Sequence record: NC_048053.1
DNA: 64,000 bases
Reading direction: 5' to 3' (one strand)
A program made the translations under genes and the position numbers. The stretch's first letter is position 1. The number at the start of each line of letters is the position of its first letter. Shown here piece by piece: positions 1 to 9,296 of the stretch. The notes below the pieces were generated by a model. The model saw nothing but the letters and a program-made list of their open reading frames with translations, was not told the origin of the DNA and did not search any database.

Positions 1-55
1 AATTTCATCCTCTGGAAATCAAACCTGTTGATTCCCGTCTTATGGAGAAAACAAA

Positions 56-505
56 GTGACTCCCGGCTACTGGAAAGTTGTTCCTAACGAACGTTCCACA
101 ACAATCATTCAGGCAATTTGCAGTGCAATTGTTTCTCCGGAAGATCTGGATGACCTGCACGTAACTCTGGCCTACGATAAAAACAATCCGGATAACGATA
201 TTCCGTTAAGCAACGCTGATTTCAAAGCAACGATTTCTGGTGTTGAACTGTTTGGCGCGAACAGTGATATTCTGGTTCTTACTTTGGACTCGGAAGATCT
301 GCAACGCGAACACGCACGCATTCACGAAAATCCTAACGTGAATTTCGATTTCATTCCGTATCGACCGCATATTACTATTGCGAAAAATGCTACGGAAGCA
401 GAACTTGAATGCCTGCACAATATCATTATGTCTCCGAACATTCCTGTGCTATCGATTGTTCTCGGTGACGAATCGCGAGAAGATATTGATGAAAGTAGAG
501 ATTGA
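56..505 (+). CDS. acb1: 2H phosphoesterase, Acb1 / T4 gp57B-like anti-CBASS nuclease
   Basis: Two HxT motifs (LHVTLAY, RPHITIA). Segments LVLTLDSEDLQREH and FDFIPYRPHIT closely match my recollection of T4 57B (LVLVLDSEYLRCRH, HDFDDYTPHIT). Size about 150 aa. Confidence 0.75.
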   Translation: MTPGYWKVVPNERSTTIIQAICSAIVSPEDLDDLHVTLAYDKNNPDNDIPLSNADFKATISGVELFGANSDILVLTLDSEDLQREHARIHENPNVNFDFIPYRPHITIAKNATEAELECLHNIIMSPNIPVLSIVLGDESREDIDESRD

Positions 506-770
506 TCTCGACAAAGAAGACCAGTTAACTCCAAATGCGCAGCGTGCCGAAGATCGTGCGAAAGTACGCCGTCGCATCAAAGAGTATGGTGACACTCCTG
601 ATGATGAAATAGATCAGAAGGAGAAAGAGAAGGAAGATCAGGCGGAAGAAAAACGCAAAACTGATAATCCTCCGCCTCCTGAAAATCTCGGTAAATTCAA
701 ACCGGAAACTTACGAAAGTCTGGATCAACAACTTTCCCATATGGACAGACAAACTTCAAAAAATCTGTAA
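489..770 (+). CDS. hypothetical charged protein (start reassigned to ATG 489)
   Basis: In frame with ORF 378..770. MKVEIDLDKEDQ start overlaps the end of the upstream gene. Confidence 0.6.
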   Translation: MKVEIDLDKEDQLTPNAQRAEDRAKVRRRIKEYGDTPDDEIDQKEKEKEDQAEEKRKTDNPPPPENLGKFKPETYESLDQQLSHMDRQTSKNL

Positions 771-773
771 ATA
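763..773 (+). promoter_or_regulatory. CTGTAAATA motif upstream of the sigma-like gene
   Basis: Recurrent motif. Confidence 0.55.
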
Positions 774-805: not shown

Positions 806-1843
806 ATGTCGGACAAGTCCAATCTTACGGGCGGTCAGACTGAGGAAGTTTTAGATACTCTGCTTTATGATTCATTACGCGAGATTGTAGAAAATACAGA
901 CTTGTTTGATGTTCAGCTTGTCTATCTCCTTAGTTTGATCACTTCGAATAAAAAACGTAAGCCGTACAATGCTGAAACTCGCGAGCGTGCTATTAGTCTT
1001 GTGATTAAAACTCTGACTACTCCACGCGAAATGCGAATGCAGTATCTGGTTGAAGTGAAGATGGAGCGCAACTTCATCTACATCTTTTTGGAAAATGTTC
1101 TGAACAAGTATTATCGCACCTATGTTGATTTGTATCGCATGTTCATTTCAACAACGGATAGCGATAAGCGTCAGATATATGCAAAACGTTTGGATGTGAT
1201 TGTTCGTGCTACTGGTGCAAGTTCGCGTTCAAAACTTTTTGTAGCGCTTGTTCGTTTGAATGATATGTTGCCTTTGTTCAAAGACTATTTTCATTCTGTC
1301 GTTGCTGATTTCTATCGCTTGTGTCAAAAACACGCGAAGTTTTATATCGACACGAACAAAGGAAAACAATTTGATAGCAAGGATGTGAATCAAAATTTCC
1401 TCCGCAATGTGTTAATTGCAATAAATAAATACGATAGTGCTAAAGGCGCAATCGTTAGTTATGTTAAGTGGTGGATTCTCAACGCACAAACGTGTAGTAG
1501 TAGCGATCACGAATATGGTATCGCCTACACAATTCCGCAAACGCAGAAGAAACGTTTGGCAACGAAAGAAGACACTACTTCCGTGAATTTTTCTGTCAGT
1601 CTTGATACTCCGACGAATGAAACTTCTGATGAGGGGATGGACGCATCCCTTCACAATAAAATGGGCAGCGAAAACCTTGAAGATTCAGTTAACGGAACGA
1701 GACAGGCAGAGAAACTTGGCCTGTTGGTGAAACGTGTTGATCCATTCGGAATCGCTCGCCTGACTATGGATATTCGGGAAGCATTCGAAAAGGAAGAATT
1801 GGATTTCATGCAAGCCTACATGCGCCGACAAGACTTGTCGTAA
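806..1843 (+). CDS. phage RNA polymerase sigma-factor-like protein
   Basis: AINKYDSAKGAIVSYVKWWILNA resembles sigma70 region 2.3-2.4 (KFD..RG..FSTYA.WWI.QA). SLDTP resembles region 3.2. No clear region-4 HTH. ATG 806 preferred over TTG 794. Confidence 0.65.
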   Translation: MSDKSNLTGGQTEEVLDTLLYDSLREIVENTDLFDVQLVYLLSLITSNKKRKPYNAETRERAISLVIKTLTTPREMRMQYLVEVKMERNFIYIFLENVLNKYYRTYVDLYRMFISTTDSDKRQIYAKRLDVIVRATGASSRSKLFVALVRLNDMLPLFKDYFHSVVADFYRLCQKHAKFYIDTNKGKQFDSKDVNQNFLRNVLIAINKYDSAKGAIVSYVKWWILNAQTCSSSDHEYGIAYTIPQTQKKRLATKEDTTSVNFSVSLDTPTNETSDEGMDASLHNKMGSENLEDSVNGTRQAEKLGLLVKRVDPFGIARLTMDIREAFEKEELDFMQAYMRRQDLS

Positions 1844-1903: not shown

Positions 1904-3088
<1,185 letters not shown>

Positions 3089-3142: not shown

Positions 3143-4648
3143 ATGGCTAAAACCAAAACTAAAGAGAAGGTTGCAAAGAAATCAAAAGCCGTTGAAGGTG
3201 GAGATCTCGTTGTAGCCAAAGCGAAGAAATCAGTTGTCGAAGCGCTTGAGCCGAAAGCGTTTGGCATTGATATGAACGCATATCTTGACAGCATCATTGA
3301 AGTTGTTGAGAAGAAAACGAAAATCAGTTCTCAGAACATGATGCGTTATGCGACTCGTATCTCAACTGGTATTCTCGCGCTCGATATGTATCTGGACGGC
3401 GGTATTGTTCCGGGCGGCTGGTACACATTTGCAGGCGGCGAACAAAGTTGTAAATCAACTCTCGCTATGTGTATCGCGGCAGCACTGATCAAACAAAACT
3501 TCCGTGGCACCACAAGTTATTTCGACTATGAAGGTTCGGCAGATGAACAGTATGCTGCAAACCAGTTGAAAACTCTCGGTGTTAAAATCGATCCGAAAGA
3601 AATCTTTGGCGTTAAAGATGATGAAACTGGCGAATGGCTGGTTCGTCCTCGTATCCGTTATTATGCGCCGGACAACGGAGAGAAATTCTTCGATTACATG
3701 TCTGGTATTCGCCGCCGTCTCCCGGATAAGATCGTAGAGAAAAACGGTGAAGCATTCTTTATTTTCGAAAACACGAAAGAAAATAAAAAGCTCGTCGGCA
3801 ATAACTACGATAAAAAATGGTTCAGCTCACACAACCAATTCAAAGTTCCTGCTCCTGACGCGCACATGCAAAGCCTTACGCTTGTCGATTCTTATCCTGC
3901 TATGATGCCGGATCAAGTTGATGATGACGAAGGCAGTAAAGCGATGGCGTTGCAGGCGCGTATGTTCTCGGACGGAATCAAACGTTTCCGTGGCGGTATG
4001 CGTCGTAAGATGATGACCGTTGTTGGCATTAACCAATTGCGTCAAAAACCTGCGACGATGTTTGGCAGTCCTGAATATGAACCGTGTGGCGATGCACTGA
4101 AATTTTATTCTGACGTTCGTTTGCGTATGGCGAGCCGTGCTGTTCCGCAAGGTTGGCCTCAGTTGAAAGATGCGCCGGGTATTGTTGGTGAGGATAGCGT
4201 GACAGTAGAAGGCGGCATTGACCGTTATCGCTTCATTGCAATTCGCACAACGAAAAACAAAATGGGCGGCATTCCAAACCAAACAACGTGGGTTCGTTTG
4301 TGGGAGTCCGATGGCAACGGTGAAGCGCGTGGTTTCGATCCTGTGTTCGATACGTGGCATTACATGAAAACTATCGGCCTGATCAATGGAACTCGCAACC
4401 GCATCAAGTTCAATGATCCGTGTCCTCTCGCAAGCAAAGTTGCAATCGACTGGCAGGAATTCCGTACTCTGATCAATGGTAACAAAGAACAGATTACGAA
4501 AATCTGCAAGAAGATGGGCGTTAAGCCTAACTCTCTGCGTGCGTGGTGTTTCAAATTCATCACAACTCCGAAAGGAAAAGATTTGCTGCGTAAGAGTATT
4601 ATTGCAAAAGGCAAATCATCTTCTGACGATGATGGTGATGATGAGTAA
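3143..4648 (+). CDS. uvsX: RecA/UvsX-like recombinase
   Basis: ISTGILALDMYLDGG, Walker A variant GGEQSCKST, Walker B LTLVDS, ALQARMFS, INQLRQK..MFGSPEYEPCGDALKFYSDVRL. Confidence 0.9.
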   Translation: MAKTKTKEKVAKKSKAVEGGDLVVAKAKKSVVEALEPKAFGIDMNAYLDSIIEVVEKKTKISSQNMMRYATRISTGILALDMYLDGGIVPGGWYTFAGGEQSCKSTLAMCIAAALIKQNFRGTTSYFDYEGSADEQYAANQLKTLGVKIDPKEIFGVKDDETGEWLVRPRIRYYAPDNGEKFFDYMSGIRRRLPDKIVEKNGEAFFIFENTKENKKLVGNNYDKKWFSSHNQFKVPAPDAHMQSLTLVDSYPAMMPDQVDDDEGSKAMALQARMFSDGIKRFRGGMRRKMMTVVGINQLRQKPATMFGSPEYEPCGDALKFYSDVRLRMASRAVPQGWPQLKDAPGIVGEDSVTVEGGIDRYRFIAIRTTKNKMGGIPNQTTWVRLWESDGNGEARGFDPVFDTWHYMKTIGLINGTRNRIKFNDPCPLASKVAIDWQEFRTLINGNKEQITKICKKMGVKPNSLRAWCFKFITTPKGKDLLRKSIIAKGKSSSDDDGDDE

Positions 4649-4689: not shown

Positions 4690-5091
4690 ATGTCTGATTT
4701 TCTTCCATCCGATATTCGTCCCGGAACGATGTTTGATAATCCGGTAGAATATGTTCCGGAACTTTCGCTCGCTCTTTTCAATCGCCTGTTGGTCGAAGTC
4801 AAAAAGAACTCAGTAACAAACAATCGCTTTGCATTTATGGTTGGCGATGCACTGCGGGAAAGTTTTGATGACTGTCGCCGTGGCGCAAGTGAAATGCGGT
4901 TATCGTTGTATTTTGATCCGTACATGAAAGAACTTCCCAAAGAATATTTGGGTGTCATTCTCGGTACTCCAATTTTCGCGAACTCTGGTTTAAATCCGTA
5001 TGCGCTTATTGCTGTAAGTTTCGCTGAATCTCGCGACGGCAAATATGATGCACAATATCAGACTGGTGTTGATCTCACACCAAATCTGTAA
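4690..5091 (+). CDS. hypothetical protein
   Basis: ORF with AGGAG Shine-Dalgarno. Confidence 0.7.
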   Translation: MSDFLPSDIRPGTMFDNPVEYVPELSLALFNRLLVEVKKNSVTNNRFAFMVGDALRESFDDCRRGASEMRLSLYFDPYMKELPKEYLGVILGTPIFANSGLNPYALIAVSFAESRDGKYDAQYQTGVDLTPNL

Positions 5092-5144
5092 ATAGGTATT
5101 GAAGAATTGCTGTGTGTAGTCTTGCTCTCATAAAGAGCATTTTC

Positions 5145-7474: not shown

Positions 7475-9292
7475 ATGTCTACTATTTCTTTGTCGCAGAA
7501 GAGTCAAGAGATTGCCTCTCTGTCGGCATCTGTTGCGCAAAAGGAAGCTGCAAAGTTTCTTTTTGGCAAAAACTATTTGAAGATCCTTGAGACAATCGAG
7601 AAACTTGCGAAGTCGAAAGTGGTTGTATCGCCTCAATTGCGTGGTCTGCTTCTGATGATGCGCGATGCGGAAGACGCAGAGATCATTAAGTTTCAGAAAT
7701 CCGTGCCGGGTAAAGCAACAATCAAAGCCGCGCAGGATCTGCTTAAAGCAAAAACTCTGGATGCAAGTTTGAAAGCATTTCGAGGGATTAAGGTTGCGAA
7801 GAAATGGACGCAAGAGGCAAGCCAAACAAAAGACGTGACGAAGCCCGTTCCGAAAGTTAAACCTGCTCGCCAGCCTAAACCTGCGCCGGAAGAAAAACCT
7901 GTTCTGAAAGTTGGTGAACAAGTTAAGTCTGCACCGAAAATTGGAACGCCTCAAATTCCCGATCTCACCAATAAACCAAATCCGGATACCAAATTCGGCA
8001 AACTGGTTAATGACACCGTTCGCGTTATCGTGAATGCTGCATACCTGATCGATGATTCGATGATCATGCTGACCAAAAACGGCGGCTATCAAATTCGTAT
8101 CTATCCAAAAGTTACTGACAACCCGCGTGAAGATCTCGCTTATGGGATCATTGTTCATAAAGACGAAACTTTCAGTTACGGTGTTTATGACAAAAACGGT
8201 ATCGGTAAAACTGTTGGCAGTGATACCAACATGCGCAAAGCAGTGTCGCATATTATTCACGAAATCGAAACCAACAACCCGACCAATGCTAACGCGTTTC
8301 AGGTTGCTTTCGGCAAAGGCAAAGCAAAAGACGATCATAAATCTGAAACCGTTCTGGTTGATGAAATTTCTGATGTGTTGCCGCAAACTCTGGATAAAAA
8401 GTTTGAGAACTATACCGATCACGTTAAAGCGATTGGCGATAACCTCAAACGAAATATTCCCGGCCTGAAAACTAAATTGCTTCCTCGCGGTCTGGAATTG
8501 ATCATGGGGCAGGATGAATTCGGCACGCTGAAATTCGGTGATGGGCGTTGGTTACTCACGCCATATAAACGCGTACACAAGACGGTTGATATCGGGCAGA
8601 ACTATGACGCAGGCTACGTGATTCAAACACTGAAAGATATGTTTGAGGCTGATCGTAAACGCGCTGCGCGTAAAGAAAAAACTCATGGCGTAACAGATAA
8701 CCTGATGTTGAAATACAAACAGGATATGATGAGCGCACTGGCAAGTAGCGATCTGAAACTGTTCGACGAAGTTCATAACGGAAAAGAAACCAACGACGAT
8801 AATCTTGTTTGGGATATGTCGTATCGTATGCCCGAAACTGGAATCTCGTTGCCCGTTTCTATTCGCTATAATCGCCGTCGTGGTTACAGCTTTGGATTGA
8901 ATGGCGCACCTTACACGATGATTCAACCGGGCGTAGCTCAGAACATTGGTAAGTTTGTTCGCGCTCTCAAATCCACTATTGCCGCTGTTGTGAAAAGTAG
9001 CAGTAAAAAATATGCGCTTGTTGATGGGCGTCCGTTTACTCCGGGAACTGGCGTGCTGCACGCGAAAGCGAAAGCGGTTGATATTCGCTGCACGCAAACA
9101 GCAATTTTCCTTACTGGTAATCCTGCGGCGGTTTCGACTTTGTTCGACGGAAGTTTCAAACAGCCTCTGCTGGATTCTAAAGGCACGGCAACCGTGAACC
9201 GTGCGGCACCGAACAACTATCGCATTCTCTGCAATAATGAGGAAGTGCGTGATCAAATCCTGATGGGTGCAAACATCATCCGGAAACTGTAA
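7475..9292 (+). CDS. large hypothetical protein with Lys/Pro-rich linker
   Basis: 605 aa ORF with GAGG Shine-Dalgarno, flanked by terminators. Confidence 0.75.
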   Translation: MSTISLSQKSQEIASLSASVAQKEAAKFLFGKNYLKILETIEKLAKSKVVVSPQLRGLLLMMRDAEDAEIIKFQKSVPGKATIKAAQDLLKAKTLDASLKAFRGIKVAKKWTQEASQTKDVTKPVPKVKPARQPKPAPEEKPVLKVGEQVKSAPKIGTPQIPDLTNKPNPDTKFGKLVNDTVRVIVNAAYLIDDSMIMLTKNGGYQIRIYPKVTDNPREDLAYGIIVHKDETFSYGVYDKNGIGKTVGSDTNMRKAVSHIIHEIETNNPTNANAFQVAFGKGKAKDDHKSETVLVDEISDVLPQTLDKKFENYTDHVKAIGDNLKRNIPGLKTKLLPRGLELIMGQDEFGTLKFGDGRWLLTPYKRVHKTVDIGQNYDAGYVIQTLKDMFEADRKRAARKEKTHGVTDNLMLKYKQDMMSALASSDLKLFDEVHNGKETNDDNLVWDMSYRMPETGISLPVSIRYNRRRGYSFGLNGAPYTMIQPGVAQNIGKFVRALKSTIAAVVKSSSKKYALVDGRPFTPGTGVLHAKAKAVDIRCTQTAIFLTGNPAAVSTLFDGSFKQPLLDSKGTATVNRAAPNNYRILCNNEEVRDQILMGANIIRKL

Positions 9293-9296
9293 ATAT

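Follow-up and report, generated by a model that had tools for sequence, protein, structure and literature searches.

What does the short gene gp220 of the Dickeya phage vB_DsoM_JA29 encode: an enzyme that destroys the cyclic-nucleotide messengers of bacterial immunity, or a phosphodiesterase that acts on RNA ends? The public records offer two labels for one and the same protein, namely 'putative cyclic phosphodiesterase' in GenBank and 'RNA ligase' in RefSeq. The phage (MH460461 / NC_048053; 253,323 bp; genus Salmondvirus) infects Dickeya solani MK10, and the stretch analysed here, referred to as the window, comprises 64,000 nucleotides starting at position 186001 of the JA29 genome, to which its first 6 kb show 100% identity. 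We consider it probable, with a rough probability of 0.7, that gp220 belongs to the Acb1 family and acts as a small 2H phosphodiesterase that needs no metal and destroys cyclic-nucleotide immune messengers. The gene lies at the very beginning of the window:

43 to 46, plus strand: GGAG ribosome-binding site of gp220, read from the sequence, 9 nt before the GTG start codon
56 to 505, plus strand: gp220, predicted Acb1-family 2H phosphodiesterase of 149 aa, with GTG start and TGA stop at 503 to 505

The same coding sequence is present in the RefSeq and GenBank records (protein accession YP_009811334), and orthologues from related phages and metagenomes share the identical start position. The start codon overlaps the TGA stop codon of the upstream gene gp219 in the sequence GTGA. 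When gp220 was compared with three orthologues at 95, 81 and 71% identity, dN/dS ratios of 0.06, 0.11 and 0.16, respectively, were obtained (Nei-Gojobori), which identifies gp220 as a constrained protein-coding gene. The common start of the orthologues, the low dN/dS and the database coding sequences together establish that the frame is not a chance open reading frame. It is under purifying selection, which is strong on catalytic and cleft residues. The original prediction, made from the DNA letters, had placed an open reading frame at 56 to 505, and this frame agrees with both the orthologues and the annotated coding sequence. Its two HxT motifs are present as H35-V-T37 and H105-I-T107, and the two segments it had quoted correspond to residues 73-86 (LVLTLDSEDLQREH) and 98-107 (DFIPYRPHIT). 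It was likewise right in assigning the DNA to a jumbo phage outside the T-even group, as the 253-kb genome attests, and in describing a sigma/replication neighbourhood: immediately downstream are the genes for a sigma factor, SSB and RecA/UvsX, and a primase gene is found 5 kb upstream.

Which 2H family does the protein belong to? The top Pfam family is PF23474, 'Anti-CBASS protein Acb1', with 52.1 bits (E 7.5e-14) against a cut-off of 27. The sister 2H models PF13563 (34.7 bits) and LigT_PEase, PF02834 (24.2 bits), also exceed their cut-offs, while the NCBIfam equivalog for ThpR, TIGR02258, gives 28.3 bits and stays below its cut-off of 65.7. Among the PHROGs, gp220 matches phrog_755 with 96.7 bits over residues 2-145, and T4 gp57B/Acb1 falls into the same group (228 bits). 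The RefSeq name 'RNA ligase' is misleading because it is carried by phrog_755, the PHROG of T4 Acb1; T4 57B itself bears the same product name. Pairwise BLASTP of gp220 with T4 Acb1 returned 32% identity over 84 residues, and hhalign of the jumbo-phage clade against T4-like sequences gave 96.4% probability over the catalytic core, with the alignment ending at residue 117. In a single-sequence phmmer search of the PDB, the sole significant relative of gp220 was FBB1 Acb1 (7T26, E 9e-5). A profile built from the clade recovered FBB1 Acb1 (E 2.6e-6), the BCSR5 phosphodiesterase 9Q2G (E 1.4e-4) and the 2H domain of the Pam3 portal protein, and no LigT/ThpR structure at E<1. BCSR5 PDE-9 reaches 56 bits on the PF23474 model, about level with gp220. 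All clade members checked, including those from Yoloswag and the Erwinia homologues, score 43-61 bits on PF23474, and Acb1 is the top family in every case. When 185,579 species genomes were scanned with patterns derived from the clade alignment, the patterns used matched no bacterial homologue.

The match to the Pam3 protein concerns the C-terminal domain of the portal protein of this cyanophage (8HDS chain A, residues 499-593), which is hit by the jumbo-phage Acb1 profile with E 2.7e-4 and displays an HVT...H.S pattern. Among the 2H fold matches there are, in addition, several large phage 'structural proteins'. These matches suggest that 2H phosphodiesterase domains are part of some virions.

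Structure prediction led to the same family. The AlphaFold2 model of gp220, computed from a 26-sequence alignment, has a mean pLDDT of 87.3 and a pTM of 0.83. It was compared with 48,161 PDB representatives using VIA, a fold search that is independent of Foldseek. The best match was 9Q2Y, i.e., BCSR5 PDE-9 (Z 15.9, rmsd 2.7, 141 aligned residues), followed by 7T27, FBB1 Acb1 with cGAMP product (Z 15.2, rmsd 2.6, 135 aligned residues). A clear gap separates these Acb1-type enzymes from other 2H proteins such as the Arabidopsis CPDase (Z 11.6) and E. coli LigT 4QAK (Z 11.4). Foldseek ranks the matches in the same order. As modelled, the fold of gp220 is nearest to Acb1-type enzymes. An Acb1-like phosphodiesterase, diverged from its T4 counterpart, is what had originally been proposed, together with HMM and fold comparisons as the means of checking it and a closer match to LigT/ThpR as the outcome that would speak against it. 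Both comparisons came out on the side of Acb1: PF23474 ranks first with 52 bits compared with 35 for PF13563 and 24 for LigT, solved Acb1-type enzymes head the fold list with Z scores of 15.9 and 15.2 while LigT/ThpR stays at 11.4, and the identity to T4 Acb1 of about 25% justifies the term 'diverged'.

These rankings bear directly on a competing explanation, according to which gp220 is a ThpR/LigT-like RNA 2',3'-cyclic phosphodiesterase that heals RNA ends, e.g., after attack by a host anticodon nuclease, or scavenges 2',3'-cNMPs. The two database labels are in line with this idea, as are the scores above cut-off for PF13563 and PF02834. In addition, the chemistry is common to all 2H enzymes, and the reaction of Acb1 likewise proceeds via a 2',3'-cyclic phosphate intermediate (PMC9117128). 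However, the label 'RNA ligase' derives from the PHROG of the T4 Acb1 family, the equivalog score for ThpR amounts to 28 bits where 65.7 are demanded, LigT/ThpR structures reach Z 11.4 compared with 15-16 for the Acb1 type, and the clade profile retrieves no LigT from the PDB at E<1. Furthermore, the phage lacks the enzymes that would complete a repair pathway. Rnl1 (PF09511), Rnl2 (PF09414) and RtcB (PF01139) are all absent from the complete 253-kb genome, with T4 serving as the positive control for PF09511, and gp220 is the only 2H protein encoded by JA29. Without an RNA ligase in JA29, an RNA-repair role for gp220 finds no support. Given the missing ligase and the rankings by sequence and fold, a ThpR-like healing function is unlikely, and the ThpR/LigT reading as a whole appears distinctly improbable to us.

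If gp220 is an Acb1-family enzyme, its active site should be recognizable from FBB1/T4 Acb1, for which a catalytic tetrad of H44, T46, H113 and T115, base-stacking residues Y12, W74, F107 and W147 and a glutamate, E141, that reads the N6 of adenine have been described (PMC9117128). The counterparts in gp220 are encoded as follows:

71 to 73, plus strand: codon of W6, part of an invariant G-x-W in strand 1, aligned with base-stacking Y12 of T4/FBB1 Acb1
158 to 166, plus strand: first catalytic HxT, H35-V-T37, aligned with H44/T46 of Acb1
251 to 253, plus strand: codon of F66, aligned with base-stacking W74 of Acb1
350 to 352, plus strand: codon of F99, aligned with base-stacking F107 of Acb1; F or H in the jumbo-phage clade
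368 to 376, plus strand: second catalytic HxT, H105-I-T107, aligned with H113/T115 of Acb1

H35, T37 and H105 are invariant over both the jumbo-phage and the T4 clade, and T107 is at least 90% conserved. As read from the joint alignments, the catalytic tetrad of gp220 is intact, and three of the four stacking aromatics of Acb1 are kept alongside it. Note that these contact residues were assigned by sequence alignment alone and not from model coordinates. The assignment for the column of Glu141 depends on the method: MAFFT places E142 of JA29 there, and a lysine in the Erwinia Y3-like subclade, L-INS-i yields a different register, and hhalign leaves the C-terminal third unaligned.

The fourth stacking residue, Trp147, resides in a C-terminal lid formed by residues 145-152 of FBB1/T4 Acb1 (PMC9117128). 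In its place gp220 has the following element:

485 to 502, plus strand: short acidic C-terminal tail, residues 144-149, modelled with low confidence

The last 12 residues of JA29 gp220 contain no aromatic residue, and only one member of the clade (P0012) has one there. The tail is unconserved and of variable length throughout the clade and is missing in some members. At the opposite end, three residues precede G4-Y5-W6, and the structural alignment with PDE-9 begins at residue 15 of the latter. gp220 is therefore devoid of both the Trp-bearing C-terminal lid of the T4/FBB1 type and the N-terminal lid of the BCSR5 type; it is a member of the Acb1 Pfam family outside both lid subtypes studied to date. 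It does possess an extra helix in the second lobe (residues 114-124), which is shared with PDE-9 and absent from T4 Acb1.

What the absence of a lid would mean for activity can be judged from a preprint on related phage enzymes (10.1101/2025.08.21.671373). There, a lid-less version of T4 Acb1 did not activate Panoptes, and the authors took this to mean that catalysis requires the lid. PDE-9 deprived of its lid still degraded 3'3'-cGAMP, its specificity residing in the core. Intact PDE-9 cleaves 3'3'-cGAMP and spares 2'3'-c-di-AMP. Since PDE-9 is active without its lid and has its specificity in the core, lid-less gp220 can plausibly be active, perhaps on fewer substrates. As both known lid types are missing, the substrate range of gp220 may differ from that of the enzymes studied; it is probably narrower than that of T4 Acb1 or simply different. 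The absence of a lid thereby lends some support to the original suggestion that the substrate specificity is possibly a different one.

Two further explanations have to be weighed here. According to the first, gp220 is an Acb1-family enzyme that has been retargeted, either to the cyclic oligoadenylates of type III CRISPR systems or to a restricted subset of CBASS messengers that spares 2'3'-c-di-AMP and thereby avoids Panoptes-type guards. gp220 lacks the Trp lid at the C-terminus as well as the 15-residue lid that PDE-9 has at its N-terminus, its core has the extra second-lobe helix that is present in PDE-9 and absent from T4 Acb1, PDE-9 spares 2'3'-c-di-AMP with the core governing specificity, and substrate ranges differ sharply between the structural groups of phage 2H enzymes (10.1101/2025.08.21.671373), all of which would fit. 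Yet the argument is a purely structural one, and it has to contend with the retention of three of the four stacking residues and of the entire catalytic tetrad. We regard such retargeting as unlikely. The second explanation holds that gp220 looks catalytically competent, is inactive on the known messengers and has another substrate or a binding role. Precedents exist, as two structural groups of phage 2H enzymes were inactive on all 18 messengers tested and as lid-less T4 Acb1 appeared, in the reading of the authors, to have lost catalysis (10.1101/2025.08.21.671373). Against this stand the strong purifying selection to which the residues of the catalytic centre and cleft of gp220 are subject, the fact that its closest structural neighbours are broadly active group-3 enzymes, and the tolerance of PDE-9 to lid deletion with 3'3'-cGAMP as the substrate (10.1101/2025.08.21.671373). 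A gp220 that is inactive on the known messengers is very improbable indeed.

Based on the preferred reading of gp220 as a messenger-destroying Acb1-family enzyme, its mode of action can be outlined by homology with FBB1/T4 Acb1 and BCSR5 PDE-9. H35/T37 and H105/T107 would face each other across the cleft of a U-shaped beta-sheet. One of the histidines would activate a ribose 2'-OH for attack on the neighbouring 3'-5' phosphodiester bond in a cyclic di- or trinucleotide, and the ring would be opened via a 2',3'-cyclic phosphate intermediate that is then hydrolysed, with W6, F66 and F99 probably stacking on the bases of the substrate. The protein would be made in the infected Dickeya cell from the run of overlapping small genes upstream of the sigma, SSB and recombinase genes and would destroy the messengers of CBASS, and possibly those of type III CRISPR or related systems as well, so early that the effectors of abortive infection are not activated. 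Substrate, timing of expression and biological effect are thus aspects that we only infer. A promoter scan returned no convincing sigma-70 promoter for the gene run containing gp220, and the only 'RNA' runs in which a portion of the stretch occurs consist of metagenome contigs from wastewater or seeds, which are unable to show transcription.

Does the genomic context point to a partner or a regulatory setting? Eight small genes, gp214-gp221, abut or overlap one another, and gp220 is number seven among them; most of the eight are without known function. This run is followed directly by the genes for the sigma-like factor, SSB and RecA/UvsX. The immediate neighbours are:

1 to 59, plus strand: 3' end of gp219 (172 aa; whole gene at genome positions 185541-186059), whose TGA overlaps the GTG of gp220
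489 to 770, plus strand: gp221, 93 aa, highly charged, without family match, the last gene of the run gp214-gp221
806 to 1843, plus strand: phage sigma-like factor (phrog_17569), a downstream neighbour conserved in all related loci

The first 17 nt of gp221 are shared with the 3' end of gp220, and a gp221 homologue was detected in four of 15 related IMG/VR loci. The order gp218 - gp219 - Acb1 - sigma, on the other hand, is found in all 15 of these loci, and the order gp219 - Acb1 - sigma is also kept in Yoloswag. Altogether, gp219 is located directly upstream of acb1 in 16 of 17 related jumbo-phage loci; in Yersinia phage fHe-Yen9-02 its position is taken by an unrelated gene. The overlap of the gp219 stop with the acb1 start recurs in the related loci examined, and from this arrangement gp219 is predicted to be translationally coupled to gp220. 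In Erwinia Y3-like loci, identity is 37-42% for Acb1 and 24-26% for gp219, compared with about 70% for the sigma factor and 48-72% for gp218. Acb1 and gp219 hence diverge much faster than the sigma factor and mostly faster than gp218, a pattern that is common for host-facing genes but is no proof of such a role.

gp219 contains the invariant residues C127, H130-P-E, C143, C146 and H156, which make up a zinc-type motif C-x2-H-P-E ... C-x2-C ... H, and its AlphaFold model is confident (pLDDT 87). Searches with gp219 yielded no Pfam family, no lead in the ESM Atlas and only weak PHROG matches to groups without known function, and comparison of its fold with the PDB found nothing significant (best Z 8.1, to designed ferredoxin-like proteins; Foldseek E > 0.03). 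Combining these features with the lid architecture, one could picture the Dickeya/Erwinia jumbo-phage clade as a third, lid-less Acb1 subtype with a substrate range unlike that of T4 Acb1, for example an enzyme that spares 2'3'-c-di-AMP and so escapes Panoptes-type guards, or a specialist for cyclic oligoadenylates, with the coupled and co-varying gp219 as a possible accessory or lid-substituting partner. We put this forward tentatively, as a possibility that is unlikely in its full form.

Our analysis also yielded insight into further features of the surrounding DNA. The 9-mer CTGTAAATA occurs on the plus strand at window positions 765-773, 5086-5094 and 9287-9295, i.e., three copies in 18 kb where 0.06 are expected. 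The two copies that were checked, at 765 and 5086, span a gene stop codon just before the next gene, and the one at 765 precedes the sigma-factor gene. The 9-mer may be a phage promoter or a processing motif. Between gp213 and gp214, about 2.1-2.6 kb upstream of the window, there is an 'intergenic' gap of 450 nt (L001:3431-3885). It is covered by a long, protein-like open frame on the plus strand (3232-3969), which may be an unannotated gene. Also upstream of the window (L001:2006-3022) is gp212, which bears the label 'CRISPR/Cas system associated'. Pfam and PHROG identify it as a PD-(D/E)XK (Cas4-like) nuclease, and it sits between the primase gene and the run of small genes that includes acb1. 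The SSB gene (window 1904-3088, plus strand) encodes a tail of ~130 residues composed of alternating poly-Asp and poly-Lys/Ser runs; in the JA29 genome paper, the SSB protein is reported to have 32 differences from that of JA11.

How much of this is new? The top match of the gp220 model in a library of viral protein models is UniProt A0A384ZXI9, which is gp220 itself and is named 'Anti-CBASS protein Acb1 [Dickeya phage vB_DsoM_JA29]'. The name 'Anti-CBASS protein Acb1' is attached to several other jumbo-phage models among the matches, and UniRef uses it for the JA33 orthologue as well. The assignment of gp220 to Acb1 is thus already known in public annotation, and our work adds nothing on this point. 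A DefenseFinder-based pangenome paper from 2026 lists acb1 in 61 of 227 Erwinia phage genomes (PMC13480210), a count that fits the 55 Erwinia phage records in which we found a gp220 homologue. JA29 and the Erwinia and Dickeya phages are absent from the text supplements of Hobbs et al. 2022 (PMC9117128). The table of 75 phage 2H enzymes in Doherty et al. 2025 contains the related phage PaBG and not JA29, and no member of the clade was among the purified enzymes (10.1101/2025.08.21.671373). gp220 is not discussed in the original JA29 genome paper, and our literature search retrieved no statement on CBASS in Dickeya solani. A 2026 review names a single anti-defence protein described to date from jumbo phages, namely the sponge Tad1 of phiKZ. 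The residual interest is modest and lies in the lid-less architecture of gp220 and in its coupled zinc-motif neighbour gp219. If gp220 is active, a jumbo phage of a potato pathogen could overcome cyclic-nucleotide immunity such as CBASS, and such anti-immunity activity, if true, bears on the choice of phages for biocontrol. A question of broader significance is in what way a core of the Acb1 type operates when both known lids are missing, and whether this alters the set of messengers that are cut.

A comparison with the characterized 2H enzymes puts these features into perspective. The E. coli LigT (ThpR/LigT; 4QAK/5LDI) and the plant CPDase (1FSI) resemble gp220 in belonging to the 2H superfamily, in having two HxT motifs and in sharing the same chemistry (Z 11-12). 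They are larger (170-190 aa), and gp220 remains below the NCBIfam equivalog cut-off.

T4 gp57B and FBB1 Acb1 (7T26, 7T27; Hobbs et al. 2022, PMC9117128) have PF23474 and phrog_755 in common with gp220. They are of almost the same length (152 versus 149 aa) and adopt the same compact 2H fold (Z 15.2) with an HxT/HxT tetrad. Of the aromatic residues, Y12 corresponds to W6 in the G-x-aromatic of strand 1, W74 to F66 and F107 to F99, while the histidine of the central helix, H95, is kept as H86. The identity between the T4 protein and gp220 is only ~25%, and tblastn with T4 Acb1 at 1e-3 misses the jumbo-phage clade. T4/FBB1 Acb1 has the lid residue Trp147, which gp220 lacks, whereas gp220 has an extra second-lobe helix of ~9 residues. 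The neighbours differ as well, with 57A/ipI flanking acb1 in T4 and the zinc-motif protein and the sigma factor flanking gp220, and the phages carrying the two genes are unrelated.

BCSR5 PDE-9 (9Q2G, 9Q2Y; Doherty et al., 10.1101/2025.08.21.671373) is the best structural match of gp220, with an identity of about 21%. It alone has the 15-residue N-terminal lid ahead of its G-L-Y strand, where gp220 has three residues, and it carries an asparagine in the column of H86, which is occupied by histidine in the JA29 and T4 clades. The two enzymes are alike in possessing the second-lobe helix, in lacking a Trp-bearing C-terminal lid and in being encoded by phages with genomes of >200 kb.
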